Source of the DNA: Eukaryota sp. TZLM1-RC
Lineage: Eukaryota > Protista > Metamonada: BaSk clade
Assembly (NCBI GenBank): GCA_040285825.1
Contig: JAUPSS010000001.1
Location: 1,922,001 to 1,986,000 of the forward strand
Length of the DNA: 64,000 nt
Reading direction: 5' to 3'
The notes beneath the pieces were generated by a model that was not told the origin of the DNA, made no database searches, and was given only the letters and a program-made list of their open reading frames with translations. Within the stretch, counting starts at the first letter, position 1, and the number at the start of each line of letters is the position of its first letter. Both the position numbers and the translations under genes were made by a program. Below, piece by piece: positions 10,720 to 58,935 of this stretch.

Positions 10720-11010
10720 GATCACAGAAAATATGGCCAAGATATCGAAGAAGCTAATTTCGATAGCAACAGACCACTTGTTTTTATTGCTTTCCCATTA
10801 TTTATAAACTGAAGACTACCAGTAGAAGCAGGGAATTTCCAAAAATTGGTTCAAGGAAAAATTAGGAAATTTAATGTTTTTTCGTGGTGGTTATGAATTC
10901 AACTTGCTATATTTAATAGACTATTTCGCTTCTTGAATTCAATAAAAGAAGCAAGAAAAAACGCAGATCAGGATTTTGCAGAGGAAATGTTGTTTCATTG
11001 ATTTTCATAC
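10720..11010 (+). mobile_element. 3' fragment of REL retrotransposon family D
   Basis: DNA similar to 46830-47155 and 19535-19807 (KYxxDIEEAN..FIAFP..DQDF). Confidence 0.8.
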
Positions 11011-11696
11011 CAATGGTTCTGATTGTATTGTATTCAGTATTTTAAAATTAATTGAAAATAAAGTATTCAGTATATTCTTGGGGACCGTGATTATTAAGGC
11101 CGTGTGTAATGTCACACTATATATTTCAAAACACAATATTTGGAAGGACCTTTTTTGTTCAAAGTGTCCCATCCCTGCTACATATTCAGACCACTGGTCG
11201 GATTTTCTATTTACGCCATACTGTTTTTTGAACAAATTATACCAACTATTGTCGCAAAAATAATTCGATTAATTTTATTATAAATTCATCATTTTCGTGA
11301 ATTTCATCTTTTCTTCACATATCGGTTAATTAAAAAAATATTTTTTATTTTATTTTTATTTATCATATATATTTTTTATTTAATACGTGTCTAAAATTTT
11401 TTTTAATTAATATAGTTTTTAAAATAAATAATAAATACAAACTATCATGGCAAAAATTGAGCGTTGGTTACAATATCTCTGAATTCTGGATTTAAACAGA
11501 AAGCAGCTCTGTGAGAAACACTGATAATTTGATCGATTCTGAGCTTGAACCTCTGTGTCAATCTGTTCTTTTCTTTAATTGATATAATTGACAATTTTAG
11601 ACTGACAATTCGGTGAAATGCAATTTCAGAATGCCGATATAACTTTCCCTTGGTGTCAAACTGTCCAGCATTTGTCCAACATTTCTGAATTACATT

Positions 11697-12040
11697 TATT
11701 CATTATAATTGTTGATTGCGTACTTGTGAATTTTGCAATTGCAGTCACTTGTTAACATAAACCACTCCTGTTGATTTAATTTTATTATTAATTGTACTAT
11801 ACATACATGATGCTGAAGTGGTATTGAAGGGTATACCACTTCAATGGAAATAATTTTTTCTCTAAACTATTCATTATTATTGTTCATTGTGTACTAATGA
11901 AACTTTCTCCTGTAGTCACTCCTTATTATAAACCACTGTTGCTGATTTAATTGTATTTTTGATAAGACTATATACTCAATATCATGAAGTGGTACTGACA
12001 GGTATACCACTTCAACTGAAATTCATTTCTCTTTCTCATA
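11697..12040. repeat. Two diverged ~171-bp tandem units, each with a TGAAGTGGTA..TACCACTTCA palindrome
   Basis: Units align from 11701 and 11872. Palindromes at 11814-11843 and 11985-12014. Confidence 0.8.
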
Positions 12041-40579: not shown

Positions 40580-41375
40580 ATTAATTTATAACTAATGGGA
40601 CGACTAACATTGAACCAAGATTTCCTCCACAAAATCTTGATCTGCTTGCTGTCTAGCTAAGGCTTCTCCTATTCGATTGAAAAACCGAGGTAATCTATTA
40701 ATAATGGCAAATTGAATTCGAGAACACCATAAAAAAATATCAAATCTTTTCATTCTTAAACCATTATTTGGAAGTCATTCAAAAAAGTTTCTGCTTCATC
40801 TGATAATCTTCCATTTATCGAAAATGGGAAAGCAATAAGAACTATCTGTGTATTTCTATCAGCATTAGCCTCTTCAATATCTTTATCATATTTTCTATGT
40901 TTTTCTTTTGCTTTAAAATCAAGCGCACTCACAGGATTAAGTTTTCTTCTGTGGACCAAAGTATCTTTTGCAACATTACATAAGACAAAGTCAAAAACAG
41001 CTTCAGAGTTCTCGATCCAATCACAGTATACATCACCTCTATTTCAGAACCAAAATTATTCAGAGAAAGTGTTTCCTTCAGCAGAGGCTCTTTGATACAC
41101 GATATTCTTGCAGTTTGTGTCATATTGACAACAATGTCTCTAACAGCATCATGTAATGAAGAACGATAAGTTATCAATTTAGAGCAATTCAGAGCATGGC
41201 GCAAAATGAGTTGAGGTGAATTCGAACAAATACATGTTTCTTTTTATAATAATTGATTAATGGGGATATTCAAATATAATCTCACTTTTGTTACAAATGC
41301 TTCATTAGTGGCACACAATACAAATGATCGTGGTACAATGGTTACAAAAAGTGACACTAGGAACCAAGAATTAAT
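40580..41375 (-). mobile_element. 5'-truncated REL family D copy
   Basis: CICSN..HALNC..YRSSLHDAVRD, KEPLL, DFVLCNV, KHRKY, AFPFSINGRL and VVPLV. Confidence 0.88.
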
Positions 41376-41429: not shown

Positions 41430-42900
41430 GTTTTATTCAACAACAAATATGAAAACATAGAAAATACATTTAAAACTCCACATCCTCAAAACCTGCCTCC
41501 CCTACATCAACACAATTAATTGCCAAAGATTCGGAAAATTTCCCAAAAGAAGAAAGTGAATCAGAAATTAGTTTCTTCATTCCCTTAAAAATAGACAATA
41601 CAATCCTGTCTTGCCAGTAAACACGATTGAAAATCCTTCCAGTTCTTTTCTTTACAACCACAACAAAATCGTCAAGGAAAGCCAAAGCAGCCTTACCTAA
41701 GGATCCAAGCAGAGAAAAAACAAAGGGACATAAAGTATATTAAATTTTCATTAACTGAGGAAATGGGTTTCGCATACTTAGCAATTTTATATTTTTCGCC
41801 TGCAAGAAGAGGATTATTTACATCCGAGTTAATGAGATGTTCGTTAGAGGAATTACAAGGCTCAATAGACATGGCGTCTAAAATAGTAAAACTACCATTT
41901 TAAACCGGGAACAACTAGATCACCTCTTGTTAGACCCATAGAACCTCTGATGTAACACGTATTATCAATATTGGGGTCATCAAGAATTAATTTTGATAAC
42001 AACGGCTCTAAAAAGGAATCTACTCGATATGATTTGCACATTACATAAATTTGGTCCCTGACGTTATTATGCACTTTGCTTCTAAATGTAATGAAATGTT
42101 TACAGTTCAAAAGATGAGTAAACAAAAGAGGCTTACCACACTTACAAGTTAAATGATTCGACAAATTGTTTGGCCACAGAAAACAACGAAAACGCATGTT
42201 TAAAAGCCATTCATTGTTTTTTAACAAAAGTCCATAAACTAAGGGAATTTGAGTTACTAAAGCAGCAGCAGAGCTATGACAAATATCCTTTAAAAAATTA
42301 CCGAAAGCGGGATTTTTAGTTTTGGCCAAGCCAAGTCTTACTTCATAATCCAATCCTTATATTATTTAGCCAGGTGGTGCTGAAGCTTTTTCAAGCAAAA
42401 ACGTAAATATGGAAGTGATCGGGTGGAAATTTCTTGAACATTTTGAGGAAAACACTGAATCCAGATATAACTAGGCAAATTATTTAATTCAATTTGAAGT
42501 TAATTCAAATAAAATTTTGATTCACCATGGATCAGATGAACACCATAAGCTAACCTTTGGAAAAATTCAAAAATGGAATTTTTTCCACCTCCTTAAAAAG
42601 CTGCTTTACATAAAATCGAAGATTTCGTGAAACAAATTCCAACCAATTCAGCAGAACAAAACACAAGGCTTCGAATTAAAGATTCATTTACCTCCAATAA
42701 TGAAGAAAAAAATTTGAGGTCGAAGTTTGTTGAAAGATCTACAAAAATCAAGAGATACTGAAGGAGGAGTTGACCTTAAAATATGAGTGAATTTTCCAGA
42801 ATAACAAATTTTTAATATAAAAAATTTGATGTGTTTTTCAATATCAAATTCAGCAATAAAACTAAGATCCTGGTCAAAATTCTCCAATAAATTGTTCAAC
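41430..42900 (-). mobile_element. 5'-truncated REL family A copy
   Basis: DIEKHIKFF, CKCGK..HLLNC..HNNVRD, EPLL, RGDLVV and FEDVEF*. Confidence 0.88.
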
Positions 42901-42904
42901 TGCT

Positions 42905-44110
42905 AAATGCTGCTATTGCATTTAATTCTGTACTTCCAAATCTGCTATCTAGTGGTAAACTGAGTGACCAACGTTTAGTTTTCAAAGGAAAGACTTACAA
43001 TTATTCAAAGACCCATTTTATCACTCTTTTCTATTTATTTTGATATGTATTTGTCTTAACAATTTGTAGATTCAGAGGAGCATGAGTACGATCTAAGCGA
43101 AGATTTGCAGGCCACTGATGAAACTTTTAAAATTGTTTTGAATTATTGGTATGGGCAAAAAGTCATTTTGAATGTTGATAATTGTTATGAAATAATGTTT
43201 TGTGCAAGATTTCTCAAAATTCCATGTTTGTATGAAAATTGTTTTAAAAAAATTCAAGATAATATTAATATATCTGGTTTTATTATCCCTTGACTCATCA
43301 AAGCAGAAGAGCGTGGTGATCACCACTTTTTCAGGGACCTTACAGGACAAGCAGAAGGTGATATTTCTGCCTGTTTGAAGAAATTATTACCCAATATGCA
43401 TGATTTTAAATCCTTATCACCTATGAATCTAATTGAAGAAGTCTTGCGGTTCTTAGTTACCACACAATATTACAATTCCATTTTTATTGAATGGTTGGTC
43501 AGTTCACTAGTGAAGTTTGGTTGTTGATAAGTTGGTTGAGTACAAGGAGCTTGAAGTTATCATTTCTGTGTTTTTTGTCAAAAAAGTTCTGCCTTCGTGT
43601 AATTTGTGTTTTTGTGGAAAGTAAGAACAAGTGGTCTTGTAGCGTCGATTATAATTACTCTGTGTTCTTCCTCACAATTGGGAAAACAGGCCATGGCAAC
43701 AAGGGAAATTTTTTGTTTCCAATTAAAAGGAAATTCTTTACTGGTTTTGTCCAAAATAATTGGTTAAACTAATATCAAGTGTCAAATTAAAATGTTCTGC
43801 CTACAACAATGCGTTGCATAAACAAAACCAACAACATTTAAGAACGAATATTCTGTTTTGTGGTAGACGGAGTGAAAGAGTACAGTTGTTTCTCCTCTGA
43901 TAATACAGCAAGAAGTCGATAATTCCGAAGCTTCACCCTGAAGAAGAATACACTTGATAACCCAATATTTTTTATGTGTAAACACCTCATTCAATAAATT
44001 CTACCGATTTTCTCGAGTTTTCCAGTGTTCTGGGTGGTAATTCGTCTACTTTATTTGGAAAAGCATCAACTCCAAATGTCAGGAAGCAATCACTCATGAT
44101 CATTTGATAG
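42905..44110 (+). pseudogene. Degraded BTB/POZ-domain gene
   Basis: TDETFKIVLNYWYGQKVILNVDNCYEIMFCARFLKIPCL is BTB-like; multiple stops. The 3' extent is uncertain. Confidence 0.6.
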
Positions 44111-44148
44111 TTTTCTTGAATAATTATTTAATTATTATTTGAATAATT

Positions 44149-44390
44149 AACTTTTGAGACCGATCTACAAAAACCGTAGTAGCATTTGCAAGATCCACTT
44201 AGATACCTCAAGTCGCGAGGCTATGTTCTGTGAAAGCAGTAGGTGTATTTAAGTGAGGTAGCCCATTGATGAAAATCATGATTGTCTTTGTCAAATGATG
44301 CTACATGTCTCTTACAGCCTGTGAGTAGACATTGACAAAATTGAAAACAGGAGTGAATTTCATAAGGGAATGCATGATAAGTGAAATTCA
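44149..44390 (+). ncRNA. Orphan copy of the putative Fanzor omegaRNA scaffold
   Basis: About 92% identical (17 mismatches in 223 nt, plus a 19-nt indel) to 58651-58873. Multi-helix fold with GCGA and two GAAA tetraloops and a terminal hairpin. Confidence 0.7.
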
Positions 44391-44443
44391 CAGTATAGAA
44401 CATTGTACATACCAAGACATACTTCATCCCCCTGCATTTCCCC

Positions 44444-44977
44444 ATGACACCCCCACCACCTCCATTTGGACCATCTCGTCGTCGTATAGTCAATGGTGGT
44501 GAGTACTCCCCTTATGATTTACCTTCCAACTCTCCCCCACTCCAGGAGGGTGAAGGCATACCGATACCAGCAGCTATTATGTCAATGTTTTTTGAGGAAA
44601 TGCTTGAAAGTGGAGTTGACCTTCCTTTTCAGTTTTCCATTGCAAGTTCAGATGACTCTGGTCCTGGCAGGCCCATTAGTGGAAGACTGCTAGCTGCTAT
44701 TTTATCAGGCAGAGAACTAGACGACACTATGTATGAAGACCTGCTAGAACTCGACGAGGATAAGGCCATTGTCCCTGTCAATCTAGACGACTTTGATGTT
44801 GAAAAATGCACTCTAGATGATAATTTTGAATGTACAATTTGTTATGGGAGCTTTAAGCCCAGGGAGTCTGTTGCGAGATTGAGATGTCAACATGATTATT
44901 GTCTTTGTTGCACAGAAAGTTTCTTGTCATGTAAGTCACGATGTCCGATATGTTTGACAGAGGTAGCTTTGAAATAA
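44444..44977 (+). CDS. RING-finger E3 ubiquitin ligase-like protein
   Basis: YEDLLELDE followed by CTIC..LRCQHDYCLCC..CPIC. Confidence 0.85.
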   Translation: MTPPPPPFGPSRRRIVNGGEYSPYDLPSNSPPLQEGEGIPIPAAIMSMFFEEMLESGVDLPFQFSIASSDDSGPGRPISGRLLAAILSGRELDDTMYEDLLELDEDKAIVPVNLDDFDVEKCTLDDNFECTICYGSFKPRESVARLRCQHDYCLCCTESFLSCKSRCPICLTEVALK

Positions 44978-45549
44978 AAACAATTTCCATACAGCTTCTC
45001 ATTACTATAAGTCATAGCTTTCTGAATTTATACAATTATTTTTAATAAACAATCAAGCATTTGTTTTTAGCTTTTGATTTGTCTTTTTCTGTATCACCAA
45101 ATTGAACATTTGATATTTTTGAGCACATTCGAGTGAGGAAAACGAATCTGCTTTTGAAGATGAAGTAAAACCTAAAACAATGTTGAATTATTAATTTGTA
45201 ATCTTTGAAATAGAAATAATGATTAATACAACCCATATGAATGAAAATGATTTATCCTTGGAATTTATTTAGTTCATGTATATTTTCAAGTCATTATGTT
45301 AGCTGTGGCTAAACGTGACTTTCCCCTTTAGGAAAGTGGATCACGTCATCATGAGTTTAAATTGCAGTTTGTTTTTATTTTCTTATATTCTGTCCATAAA
45401 CTTCTGTTTTTGTTTTTGTTTAGTGCACGAAAAGCAACAATTACTCAGAACAATTCGACAATGGCTATTTTAATTATAGCTGTATCAACAAAAAAACTTT
45501 TATTCCATTTGTATTTTTCAAAAAAAGGAAGTTAAATAGTACAATTTGT

Positions 45550-46260
45550 AACCACAGCTTGTTAGATTAATAACAACCATTCATCAAGTTTATGGAGCTT
45601 TCTTAACTGATTCTGACTGGATTTTGAATATGAGACCTCGTTCCTTTATCTGGCCTGATAATTGATTTCATAATTTAACATGCAAATGTAGTTGAACAAT
45701 TACAATCACCCATTTGTTTAAATTGTAAACATTTTATTACCTTCAGAAGCAAGATTCATGAGGCTGTAAGGGACCAATTATAATGTTGTGCCCTCATTTG
45801 ATGATGTCTTGAATGTTGTTGATGTCGTTACAGTGGATGTTTGCAAGAAAAATGCCTTGAAAAATGCACGATCTGAATTATCCTTCCTTGATGATTCAAA
45901 ATTGTACAAAATGAAAAAATTTGCAAATCCTTTAAAAGAATTGAAACATGTTCGCCATGTAGATTACCAAATTTGCCCATTTGCCGTATCGTTGTATGGT
46001 TGTTATGGAAAAACTGCTATCAATTTTATTCATGATTTTGAAAAACTTGTAAAAAGAAGAATGAATAAGCGTTTTGATCGTCGCTTGTGGCTAAATCGTA
46101 TTGTTTTTACTATTTTCAAATCAATTCCTAAAATGATTTCGAAAGCTTTAATGTCTGTCAGTGCACATTACGAAGACATTGCTGCTGTAAGGTTTGATGG
46201 TGTGGAAGCTTGTTTTGACGATATTGATTTTTAGACTGTGGTTTTGAAAATAAATAAAAA
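45550..46260 (+). mobile_element. Chimeric REL fragment (family B-like 5' part, family C 3' part)
   Basis: ITTIHQVYG..FIWPD (B-like) joined at ~45785 to VVDVVTVDVCK..PFAVSLYG..ACFDDIDF* (C-like). Confidence 0.8.
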
Positions 46261-54210: not shown

Positions 54211-56626
54211 CTTTTTTTTTTATTTTAAACATATTTGACAACTAAATTTAGCCCAAAAACTTTCATATTAAAAAGTTGAATTGGGCAACTGTAAGATTTA
54301 ATATTAAACACATTGAATATCTTCAAGTTACACAATTAATTCTTTCATTATAATGACAGTTCAGTTGTGGCTAATAAAATTTGAAAATAAAAGCAATTTT
54401 GTTCTTTTTTTCCTCGGCAATAAATTCCACTGTTTCTGGATAGTATTTGCCCCGGAACTCTGGATTCAATGTCAGAAAGTATGTTTTTAATTTCAGATAA
54501 TCTTGATTGTCCAGTCCAATTGAGGCTATGATATTTGAAGAGAAGAGGTAAAGTTAGTGGCCTTTACCACATTTACTATACTATTTGAAAACTTTACTGG
54601 AAAATTCAAGAGACCAAGAATAAGTTTATGCAAAGATACCAAAAATAAGATGCTATGACACGTCATCCTGACTGGACGACAGTGCTTGCACTAACACTAC
54701 AATGATGAATAAAATACTAGAAAATAGATCAACATTTGAAGTCCACTATCCAAGCTCGATCAGAGACTACCTGGACAGTACAATCACATCCAGAGCACTC
54801 ACAGCCGTCAACACCCCATTGAACAACAGCACCTTGTTGATAGTGCGCTCTGCTGGAGGAACCAGATGAGATAGCATTGGAGAAGGTTAATGGCAGTATA
54901 CGTTCAGCTGGCTTGCTTTCCCAGCGACCTGTAGTACCAAATGATTTGTACGTCAGAGAGTAGTCAAACTTCGGTTACGTATCTGAACTTGATACAACGT
55001 ACTGGCCGAGACCGTATGTGCTATCAAGAGCAACAGCAACAACAGACCGCTTCGCATAAGTACTATTATAATTTATAAACCAATCAAAATTGATTATATG
55101 AATTTGATTCTCTCCAATTCTGGTCATTCCTTGGGATTACTCACAAGTGGGATACTAGGTTATCAAAATCAGTGATTATGTTTGGATTACTGTTTGGACT
55201 TGATTACTGTTTCATAGCATTGTAAACTTAATTTAGCCAAATTTCCATAGAGTTCAATTGATACTTCCAATGGCAACAGGTCAAAAAGGAGCAGGGAATT
55301 TACCCAAATATATAACTAAATTTACTTAAATATGCCGAAATAGTGAGTCATTAACTGTTTGAAATATTTAATCAGAAGCTTGCCATTTTGGCTCTTCGTG
55401 GTTCCCCCATGTTTTGAAAAGCAATGTACCAAAATGTGTACTAAATGCAAACTGTAACTTAACCATCAGGCTATTGGCCAGTTAGTTTGAATTATGGTGT
55501 GGTCATGACATCTGTAACGGTGAAAAATCTTGAAAAATACTATTTATGAATATAGATGATGTACCAATTGCGGTAAGATCAATCATTGACACTGAAATAA
55601 CCAAAAAAAAAGACACACATGATGATATCTTATGGACTAAAACCAGTGTCACTGTAAAAAGTACTCAACTCCCACCCAATGGACCTATCAAACACAAAAA
55701 ACATAACTATACACAAATGTTGATGTAGGGCATCAACAGGGAGGAGGAGTCATCTTGGGTAAAGATTCCACAAAACCTGCCTGTTGTGTTTTGGGGGGGG
55801 GGGAAGGTACTACTCGTTTGAACACCAACTTCTTGGTCACAACAGTTTTGATATCACTAGCAGATTCATTCGAGACAATCATACCTAGTTAAGTACCTAT
55901 TCAACATATGATGACATAACGTTGTTTAATGGCCCTAAGATGAAGTAGACCCTTCTAATGGTGAACCAAATGAAGATGGTGCTCTTTTCTTGCGAGGAGG
56001 AGAACATCAGGCGATATGCAAGAAATACTCCAAGGACTGCAGTGATTCACTATTCAACAGAATGGTATTTAGAATGTTAATCAATCCGAAAAAGAGAGCA
56101 TCTACAGTAACTAGTAGTCTTATTGTCAAATCAGCTCTTTTAAACAGTTCCCCGAGACTGAAAAATTGATGTGTGAATAGATAAAGTCCACCAAATTTGT
56201 GAAAAAAAGCTGTTTGCAACTGTAATCAATAATGTAAAACGACTTTTGCTGTGATCTTGACAACCACAGCAAGCTGTGGAATGTACTGTATAGTAGAGAA
56301 ATGTCATTTTCTTATCAAAGTGTAATATAAAAAGTTTTGTACAAGTAGAAGGTGTGGAATTAATCAGTACACTATTAGTAAACCATAGTTATCAAAGATA
56401 AGTAGAAAAACCGGTAGGAAGAGTACACGGGAAGTCCTAAAGCTCAAAAAAGAAGGTAAGTGAGGGAAATAAGAACCTAGTTTATTACGTGAGGGAAAAG
56501 TGTGAGAATAGTGAAAACCTCCCAAAACCAAGTTTAGAGTTAAAAACCTCCCAGAACAGGCAACCAGAAGTCGACAATGGGGTGACAAGTGTAAAAGTTG
56601 ATAGATGAGCTGTTTATTCTCATTAC

Positions 56627-58562
56627 ATGTCAGACATCCACTCTGTGTCACGTGTATTCTCTTGTGCACTTAACTCGCTGCTGACCCCTGCAGCGGTGCA
56701 ACAAATTCGATGTGACATTCCTTTGGTCACCGAGATTTGTCATGAAGCTTCTTTATTGCTTCAATCTTTTCTTCTAAATTTTGCGTTGGCATCTAGAGTC
56801 CTAGTGGAACAGGATGTATGGTATCTGTTTATGACCGTCATCACCACTGGTTCTTTTCCAAAGCCATCCACCTCTAAAGGCCAACGCCAATTAGTCCATA
56901 TCTTTTACAATGGATCTCTTCCTGAATGCCCACAAGACAGGTCTCTTGTTTCTCCATGGGAAAATTCTTAAATGCTTTATAGAAATTCATTCAATCTTTT
57001 TCTCAATGCTTGGCTGCAGTCTCAGAAATGTAATTTTGTCAATGGACAAGGGCTTTCTCTCTACCTTGCTTGTCGGGCACGTCAATTGGCGTTTAACGCG
57101 AAGACAAGTTTACCTTAAATTTGCCAATCCTGGACAAAGAACTTTATTCGTGCTCATTGTAGAGCTCTAGATAAAACGAATGTTTGTGCCAAAGATCTTT
57201 TCTCTCTTTTGCCAGAGGAACCCTTATCCCAACCCGAAGAAGTAGTTATTGATGCTGTTCTCGAACACTACATCAATTTCAATCTGAATAATTCAAGCGA
57301 AAGATTCTTTTTATTAAATGATTGTAAGTTCATCTTGAATCTCCTTCAAAAAATTTCTGCCACTGCTTCACTACTGTCTTCACGTGATAAAATGACCTTT
57401 TCATCAAAGAAAATTGGTGAGCTTTTTCTCTTTAATCTTAAAATTTCACAATACTTGCTCACTTTTTTTCTCATATGCATTGCTGGAAAAAATTTAGAAT
57501 AATACCTTTAGCTTCTCATAAAGGTTCTAAATTTCATGAGGTTCCTTCACTTGTTTTCCAATCTGTGAAAAAATTTCCAATTATTGAAGGATCTTCTTCC
57601 AAAACAAAGTTGATCAAAAATACAAGTTTGAAACGATTATTCTAACAATGTCCTTACCAAAAATTTAATATCAACAGAAAAAGTTTGAAAAATAGATTTA
57701 AAAATTTTTTATTGAAAACTAATGGTGATGAACTGCTTTTGACCTTTGACAATAAAAATAATGACTCAGAAAACACAAATGAGCTGAAAGAACCACCAAA
57801 AAGAAGCGAAGATCGAAAAAAGAAATGAAAAGTGACCCTGATGCCAACAAAACCAGTAAAACACAGTTGAAAGGCACTAAAAAATGCCCCGTCGAAGACG
57901 CAGACAACCAGTCGAAATTTCCCCCTTATTGCCGTTGATCTGGGCCAATCCAGATTATGTGGTTACTTCTTAAATAATTATCAATGTGGAGTTACCCCTT
58001 GTCCTACTGGCAGAAGATACATGACAAAACCTTCACCTAGTAAACACTCTCAAAACCAAAATTCCGTTCAAAATTTCAACCAATATTTGAACCATTGGAA
58101 TTTGGCCAGGAGGAAAGTGCATTTGGAAAGTAATTGTCAGAAATGGAAGATAATTAAATTTGATAGCAGAAGACGAAAAGAGAGACGGTTCAGTGAGAGT
58201 CTCAACAAATTTCAAAGGCTGGTTGGGCATCCTGAAAACTCTATCTTGCTGTGGGTTCTGCTGATTTTCCTTCTCATTGCCGAAAACTCAAGCGATATGG
58301 ATCAGTAAGGGCTTTTGGAAAATGGTTGTGTTATCAAAAGGACATAAAGCACTCGTCAATCAGTGAATTTAATACAAGCAAACTGTCAAGTTGTTGCATG
58401 GCCGAGAATATTCAAGCAGGCTCATGGCAGATGCGTTTCTGTACTGAGTGTCAAATAGAATATGACAGAGATATTTCCTCTGCAATAAATATTCAAATTA
58501 AGAAGAAAGCGGAATTGTGGCCGGAGAGATACATTTGCCCAGCAGCTCTGTTGAGGAGATGA
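56627..58562 (+). pseudogene. Second Fanzor1 gene, multiply frameshifted
   Basis: Fanzor1-like N-terminus (VFSCALNSLL..TEICHEASLLL), RuvC-I IAVDLG (Asp codon 57937-57939), GSADF, ISEFNTSKLSSCC and CTEC..YDRDISSAINI. Confidence 0.85.
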
Positions 58563-58650
58563 ATAGGGAACCTGAGATACAGAAACAAAAACTTTAAAAA
58601 AACTGATATTTTATTTTGAGTTTTTTATTGTATTTTTGATTTTTTTTAAA

Positions 58651-58873
58651 AACTTTTGAGACCGATCTACAAATTCCTTAGTAGCACTTGTTAGATCCAC
58701 TTAGATACATCAAGTCGCGAGACTTTGTTCTGTGAAAGCAGTAGCCCATTGATGAAGATCATGATTGTCTTTGTCAAATGATGCTACGTGTGTCTTACAG
58801 CCTGTGAGTAGACATTGAGAAAGTTGAAAACAAGAGTGAATTTCACAGGGGAATGCATGATAAGTGAAATTCA
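58651..58873 (+). ncRNA. Putative Fanzor omegaRNA scaffold / element right end
   Basis: Starts 88 nt after the Fanzor stop, is homologous to 44149-44390, and homology ends sharply at ..GTGAAATTCA. Confidence 0.7.
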
Positions 58874-58935
58874 TAATAATAATAACGAATAATAATAATA
58901 ATAATAACAAATAATAATAATAATAGAATAATAAT
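58874..58935 (+). repeat. (TAA)n microsatellite
   Basis: Directly visible. Confidence 0.9.

Follow-up and report, generated by a model that had tools for sequence, protein, structure and literature searches.

The closest described counterparts of the DNA element analyzed here are the scaffolds of Fanzor guide RNAs (omegaRNA or fRNA), which were reportedly described by Saito et al. in 2023. In Fanzor elements, the scaffold is a structured non-coding module that lies 3′ of a eukaryotic TnpB homolog, before the transposon right end, and its sharp boundary is followed by unrelated flanking DNA, i.e., the guide. The scaffold length varies widely between species (PMC10530073, PMC11423790). Guide-RNA copies that lack a neighboring nuclease have been described before (PMC10530073, PMC10055086). 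Chlamydomonas reinhardtii has 20 additional fRNA copies as against six Fanzor loci (PMC10530073), and PATEs are bacterial non-autonomous derivatives of IS200/IS605 elements that encode omegaRNAs and need TnpB in trans (PMC10055086). More generally, solo ends and 5′-truncated relics of transposons keep one terminus, lose the coding part and decay neutrally at the rate of their family.

We analyzed a stretch of 64,000 nucleotides (hereafter, the window) from assembly GCA_040285825.1 of Eukaryota sp. TZLM1-RC, the type isolate of the metamonad Skoliomonas litria (PMC11603281). A literature search turned up no publication dealing with Skoliomonas Fanzors. An ORF-less ("orphan") Fanzor 3′ module, consisting of a 242-nt omegaRNA-type scaffold and a 5-nt right-end terminus (CAGTA), is located at positions 44149–44395 on the plus strand. 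It was recovered at full length (283 bits) by R1, a covariance model built from scaffold copies. As in the described Fanzor systems, the module of this family follows a eukaryotic TnpB homolog on its 3′ side and extends to the right end, a sharp boundary separates it from unrelated flanking DNA, and its length of 242 nt is within known behavior. Unlike those systems, the scaffold here is a prediction from DNA sequence, and the family protein is very remote in sequence from the solved Fanzors, with only a TNB domain detected. As in C. reinhardtii, scaffold copies exist beyond the nuclease-bearing loci; however, the algal copies are highly conserved (PMC10530073), whereas few members of the family are as diverged as the copy at 44149, much of whose fold is gone. 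It shares with PATEs the state of a protein-less remnant with a guide-RNA region, for which the nuclease would come in trans, but PATEs keep both transposon ends and stay mobilizable, whereas the fragment at 44149 is a right end only. Like solo ends in general, it has kept one terminus, lost the coding part and decayed at the rate of its family. Unlike them, its break coincides with the edge of the RNA module, as that of the second orphan described below nearly does, which may be a hotspot effect.

The scaffold (44149–44390) is 85.1% identical to positions 58651–58873 over 242 columns including a 19-nt gap, and ~92% identical without the gap (BLASTN, E = 4e-80). The similarity on which the original prediction was built is thus that of true paralogs. 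When positions 44100–44450 were compared with the window by BLASTN, 58651–58873 was the one other match, and R1 found no further scaffold copies in the window beyond these two. The orphan is also 92–95% identical to the scaffolds behind the Fanzor genes of five other loci (L001, L005, L006, L009, and L010). As had been noted from the sequence, no Fanzor ORF adjoins the module; no Fanzor DNA homology was found there either, and a search of the rest of the window for a displaced Fanzor ORF belonging to the orphan found none. The other Fanzor in the window, at ~24.8–28.4 kb, has a tail that differs from the 44149 scaffold. Similarity comparisons place the junction at which Fanzor homology stops at an AT-rich tract immediately 5′ of the orphan (44104–44148, plus strand). 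The similarity of this tract to the end of the Fanzor ORF is not significant, and its similarity to a T-rich insert found in one subfamily is marginal, with 12–72 of 300 shuffles scoring as well.

On the other side, the unique flank (44396–44443, plus strand) extends from the right end to a RING-finger start codon, and its first ~20 nt would be the putative guide if the module were transcribed as an omegaRNA. This flank has no second copy in the window or the fetched loci. The RING-finger ORF (44444–44977, plus strand; 177 aa; Pfam zf-RING_2, E = 1.1e-6) is the first exon of the deposited gene P9112_013772. The ATG at 44444 lies 53 nt past 44390, as originally counted, and 48 nt from the element end at 44395; it is the annotated start of P9112_013772, and the deposited protein (P0027) opens with the same residues. 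The P9112_013772 model (302 aa, window 44444–46234) exits the RING ORF shortly before its end and splices across ~880 nt into an ORF at ~45838–46234. This splice model may be an annotation artefact, as the second exon sits among retroelement remnants. Two minus-strand ORFs upstream of the orphan (41892–42353 and 40929–41204) contain a CxC…H…C knuckle of the kind typically seen in the C-terminal region of ORF2 from non-LTR retrotransposons; retroelement relics thus flank the orphan. Another dispersed repeat occupies 45297–45380, a segment to which several unitigs of the organism align over its length alone, with upstream sequences that differ.

For the family as a whole, eleven loci (L001–L011) were compared, among which L008 overlaps L002 and extends it upstream. 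The DNA sampled for scaffold copies totals 188 kb, the choice being biased to loci with short annotated Fanzor fragments. Over these 188 kb, R1 finds 13 scaffold copies: 11 lie directly behind Fanzor/TnpB-like genes, one of them as a 38-nt stub, and two are ORF-less. Ten of the fetched loci hold a C-terminal Fanzor fragment, and in all ten the scaffold follows 3′ on the same strand. The omegaRNA-like character proposed for the orphan is therefore well founded, in that it is homologous to a structured 3′ module with a sharp right boundary that stands behind a Fanzor/TnpB-like gene in 11 of 13 copies. Judged by its position, this boundary and its predicted structure, the 242-nt module is very probably the omegaRNA/fRNA scaffold of the family. 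Full-length elements share ~2.1–2.5 kb, and the family is a Fanzor transposon of about 2.5 kb. The short-read unitig depth of ~70 at the scaffold core, against 2–3 at the unique flank of the orphan, is a rough sign that the family has some tens of copies. Close relatives of the C-terminal piece upstream of 58651 consist only of ~20 short "hypothetical proteins" of GCA_040285825.1.

The linked copy of the window illustrates the complete arrangement. Its Fanzor/TnpB-like gene (56392–58562, plus strand) is 85–90% identical over 2.1–2.5 kb to L001, L002, and L006. The RuvC D, E, and D motifs and a zinc finger are readable, and 58251–58562 encodes a Pfam Cas12f1-like TNB domain (PF07282, E = 8.8e-8); yet what had been taken for a Fanzor ORF is a frameshifted pseudogene in at least five frame pieces. 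A spacer (58563–58650, plus strand) runs from the stop codon to the scaffold. Comparison of the upstream junctions of 12 copies revealed two subfamilies. In subfamily i, the scaffold starts ~30 nt after the Fanzor stop codon, and in subfamily ii it starts after an extra T-rich insert of ~58 nt, which adjoins the 5′ edge of the scaffold and has the direct repeat AACTTT on both sides. The insert is seen in the spacer at 58563–58650 and in L002, L003, L007, and L008. The linked scaffold (58651–58878, plus strand; R1 237 bits) has lost 19 nt between GTAG repeats, and its terminus is mutated to TAATA. A (TAA)n-type microsatellite, read directly from the sequence, abuts its right end (58879–58935, plus strand). 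The orphan does retain these 19 nt, as was first observed, but the loss is private to this linked copy, the segment being kept in 10 of 10 other spanning copies, and the fold of the orphan is weak.

The right end of the element reads …TTCACAGTA, with the boundary after …TTCACAGT(A/T) in 10 copies. At the orphan, BLAST alignments from eight loci and contig loose ends at 44395/44396 place this boundary at 44395, the loose ends showing that it recurs across the genome. Homology thus does not stop at …AATTCA, as originally read, but runs 5 nt further to CAGTA, and the first 5 nt of the guide as then written belong to the element; the putative guide starts at 44396. Past CAGT(A/T), the flanks of all copies are unrelated. 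The 3′ end of the family is constant, and its 5′ ends are variable or mosaic. L005 (2050–2065) and L006 (2130–2140) start at TAGCAATTACC, and L010 (7990–8040) has, instead of the first 49 nt, three ATTGTACAGTAAT units in tandem, which resemble the right terminus CACAGTA. The left flank of L005 reads ACAG|TA, which may be a target or TAM motif. Cut-down copies are common: L003 keeps 960 nt and L007 1085 nt, and L004 and L005 are internally deleted. In L004 (4568–5439), only the first 38 nt of the scaffold remain, followed ~55 nt later by the start of a gene that encodes a DNA polymerase B exonuclease domain.

The stems listed in the original prediction are all present in the orphan and recur in the predicted folds. 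CACTTAGATAC pairs with GTATTTAAGTG and encloses two GNRA-tipped hairpins; ATGTCT..CTTACA pairs with TGTGAG..AGACAT; and a terminal hairpin is formed by GTGAATTTCA and TGAAATTCAC. A near-consensus copy (L010, 10573–10819) is predicted to fold into a closed four-way junction plus the terminal hairpin at −82.7 kcal/mol (z = −5.64), and none of 200 shuffles folds as well. By comparison, the best fold of the orphan itself reaches −60.9 kcal/mol (z = −1.76 to −1.80), a value matched by 11–16 of 200 shuffles; its predicted fold is not above chance, and the orphan is the second-weakest folder among 12 copies. When threaded on the family structure, it gives −59.8 kcal/mol with 9 of 86 pairs broken, as compared to −73 to −79 kcal/mol and 2–3 of 86 pairs broken in five indel-free linked copies. 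It carries 12 substitutions relative to the family consensus in the first 223 columns, a number exceeded only by L007 among the 12 copies. Of these 12, five (alifold structure) to eight (consensus fold) disrupt predicted pairs, all uncompensated, and the parts of the fold that are opened are the closing helix and the first stem. Hence, the description of the orphan as well preserved has to be abandoned. An RNA read from the minus strand was also considered and rejected, since the plus strand folds better both in L010 (z = −5.64 versus −3.84) and in the orphan (−1.76 versus −0.31).

Sequence variation among the copies gives no sign that any scaffold has been constrained after insertion, since the mean pairwise identity of the linked scaffolds (94.2%) is about that of the adjacent dead ORF DNA (93.7%). 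Shared and private substitutions do not differ in the frequency with which they break pairs (p = 0.75) of a structure predicted without the use of variation data. The covariance model that had been proposed as a check recovers the 13 copies, but covariation is seen in 0 of 73 pairs and is uninformative among copies that are 93% alike. A known RNA family was rejected as an identity for the module: Rfam gives no match at the gathering score in the window, and a permissive run on the best copy returned a chance-level snoRNA (E = 0.98). No exact-pattern match to the scaffold was found in metagenome and viral collections.

The nuclease genes of the family are likewise decayed. RuvC motifs (VDLGQ, SEFNTSK, and DRD) are readable in the frames of the linked gene, but all 11 cognate genes examined are broken. 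The best copy, in L010, consists of pieces of 460 and 210 aa separated by at least two frameshifts. No intact family member was found among the deposited proteins of TZLM1-RC, where searches limited by query length recovered fragments only. The proposal that the orphan could serve Fanzor proteins encoded elsewhere accordingly finds no partner in these 11 genes or in the deposited proteins. Part of the frameshifts in the repeats could be assembly errors, the assembly being partly long-read, and an intact nuclease copy could have been missed, given that the 188-kb sample is biased to short annotated Fanzor fragments. Intact relatives came from the sister isolate Skoliomonas sp. TZLM3-RCL alone; the nearest, P0021 (659 aa), is 46% identical at the C-terminus. 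In TZLM3-RCL, P0021, P0026, and P0022 represent an apparently intact 659-aa Fanzor relative with nine near-identical members. The nearest atlas clusters to the family proteins are giant-virus proteins with TNB and DUF8286 domains, a resemblance to be taken as a lead only.

From these data, we conclude that positions 44149–44395 probably represent a decaying solo right-end fragment of a Fanzor transposon rather than a self-standing guide gene that is being maintained. At this locus, the nuclease gene, along with all else 5′ of the scaffold, would have been lost, likely by a deletion whose endpoint fell in the labile AT/T-rich tract that borders the scaffold on its 5′ side. The remnant would then have drifted neutrally, with substitutions opening the closing helix and the first stem, and its 48-nt distance to the RING start codon would reflect the insertion site of the parent element. 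By analogy with the published behavior of TnpB and Fanzor, the guide of any family member would be read from whatever DNA follows the terminus. Collectively, the original prediction stands as regards the module family and the stand-alone state of the orphan, and it does not stand as regards its preservation, a set of guides placed at promoters, or service to other Fanzors.

The position of the orphan close to a start codon is shared by linked copies. The right end of L006 (4959–4985) lies 16 nt before the annotated start codon of an arginyl-tRNA synthetase gene and that of L005 (4960–5003) lies 34 nt before another annotated start codon; therefore, transcription of these genes must either start inside the Fanzor tail or pass through it. 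Three other gene-linked right ends lie 142–249 nt from start codons. Such distances, together with the 48 nt that separate the orphan from the RING ATG and the retention of the whole scaffold in both orphans, could mean that the Fanzor tail was exapted as a promoter or 5′ leader, being kept for the start of RING transcription or its leader and not as a guide RNA. We consider this reading doubtful, because the tail is also kept where a promoter role is impossible, and because the divergence of the orphan is not reduced. In L009 (10733–10740), a convergent tubulin gene (10737–11873, minus strand) shares its stop codon with the final bases of the right end (…CAGTT), so right ends dock on stop codons too, not just on start codons. 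The second ORF-less copy (L008, 4768–4550, minus strand) points with its right end toward a gene that lies ~1.2 kb off and turns its 3′ end to the copy. As linked copies are also found near gene boundaries, the position of the orphan appears to be a family habit inherited from the parent insertion, and the idea of dispersed trans-acting guides set at host promoters is not borne out.

This second orphan bears on how scaffold-only modules arise. It begins inside the T-rich insert of subfamily ii and carries a 28-nt deletion between the direct repeats GTGAATTTCACAG and GTGAAATTCACAG at its terminus. Its short form is also seen in at least two other contigs with a similar flank (contig loose ends at window position 44362). 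In both orphans, the 5′ break falls within ~50 nt upstream of the scaffold, the two boundaries differing by ~48 nt. Under uniform breakage, such clustering has an estimated probability, obtained post hoc, of ~0.003, which counts against a plain relic reading. The shared break zone, at the same spot as the T-rich insertion, points to a breakage-prone AT-rich site or to the tail having been retained in its entirety. Since the folded unit is complete in both ORF-less copies and the break lies at most 50 nt from its 5′ edge, scaffold-only modules might be made or kept non-randomly in Skoliomonas, with the tail acting as a promoter or leader, or with the omegaRNA unit being copied (retroposed) or used in trans. 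We regard this broader proposition as unlikely.

A more specific form of it is an independently propagating scaffold-only unit, produced as an omegaRNA retrocopy by the abundant non-LTR retrotransposons or existing as a mini non-autonomous element. The 5′ boundary of each orphan coincides with, or lies just before, the first nucleotide of the folded unit, retroelement remnants surround the 44149 copy, and a constant 3′ end with variable or mosaic 5′ ends is what the family displays; moreover, a T>A substitution at alignment column 75 is exclusive to the two orphans. However, a single shared substitution is expected by chance in about 1 of 8 cases by our estimate, the two 5′ boundaries are ~48 nt apart, and both orphans end at the DNA terminus CAGTA like full elements, with no recognizable parental guide. 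A SINE or retrocopy was rejected for want of its signatures: the longest word shared by the flanks of the orphan, 7 nt, is equalled in 86 of 200 shuffles and hence gives no target-site duplication above chance, and the orphan bears no A-rich tail. A MITE or PATE with a left end was ruled out as well, as the 600 nt upstream of either orphan show no left-end homology to the 5′ parts of six full-length copies. These comparisons cover the sequence-based findings that had been named in advance as telling against the module, and the association with Fanzor 3′ ends (11 of 13) holds, with no duplication, tail or Rfam match being found. A scaffold-only unit of this kind is therefore highly unlikely.

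Finally, the orphan is most probably not a working guide-RNA gene: an independently transcribed omegaRNA that a Fanzor encoded elsewhere would load in trans, with the flank from 44396 onward as its guide, is the least probable of these explanations, for although the orphan shares homology with what is very probably an omegaRNA scaffold and both the C. reinhardtii fRNA copies (PMC10530073) and PATEs (PMC10055086) offer precedents, its fold is eroded to chance level, no sign of constraint is seen, no intact cognate nuclease occurs in the 11 copies or the deposited proteins, the flank has no other match in the DNA examined, and, under the canonical model, the TAM position at its own locus is taken by the transposon terminus, leaving no target but an empty allele.

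As a decaying solo end, the 44149 copy matters little alone, and it serves as a calibration point. It indicates that, in this protist genome, the guide-RNA modules of Fanzors persist as relics after their nuclease genes are gone, and that a fold seen by eye can mislead unless it is set against the family consensus. Of greater interest than this copy is the family itself, with tens of copies in a metamonad, a 242-nt scaffold predicted to form a four-way junction, and right ends that come within a few nucleotides of start or stop codons. Should the orphans prove to be kept for a promoter function or used in trans, this would bear on the domestication of RNA-guided transposons in eukaryotes.
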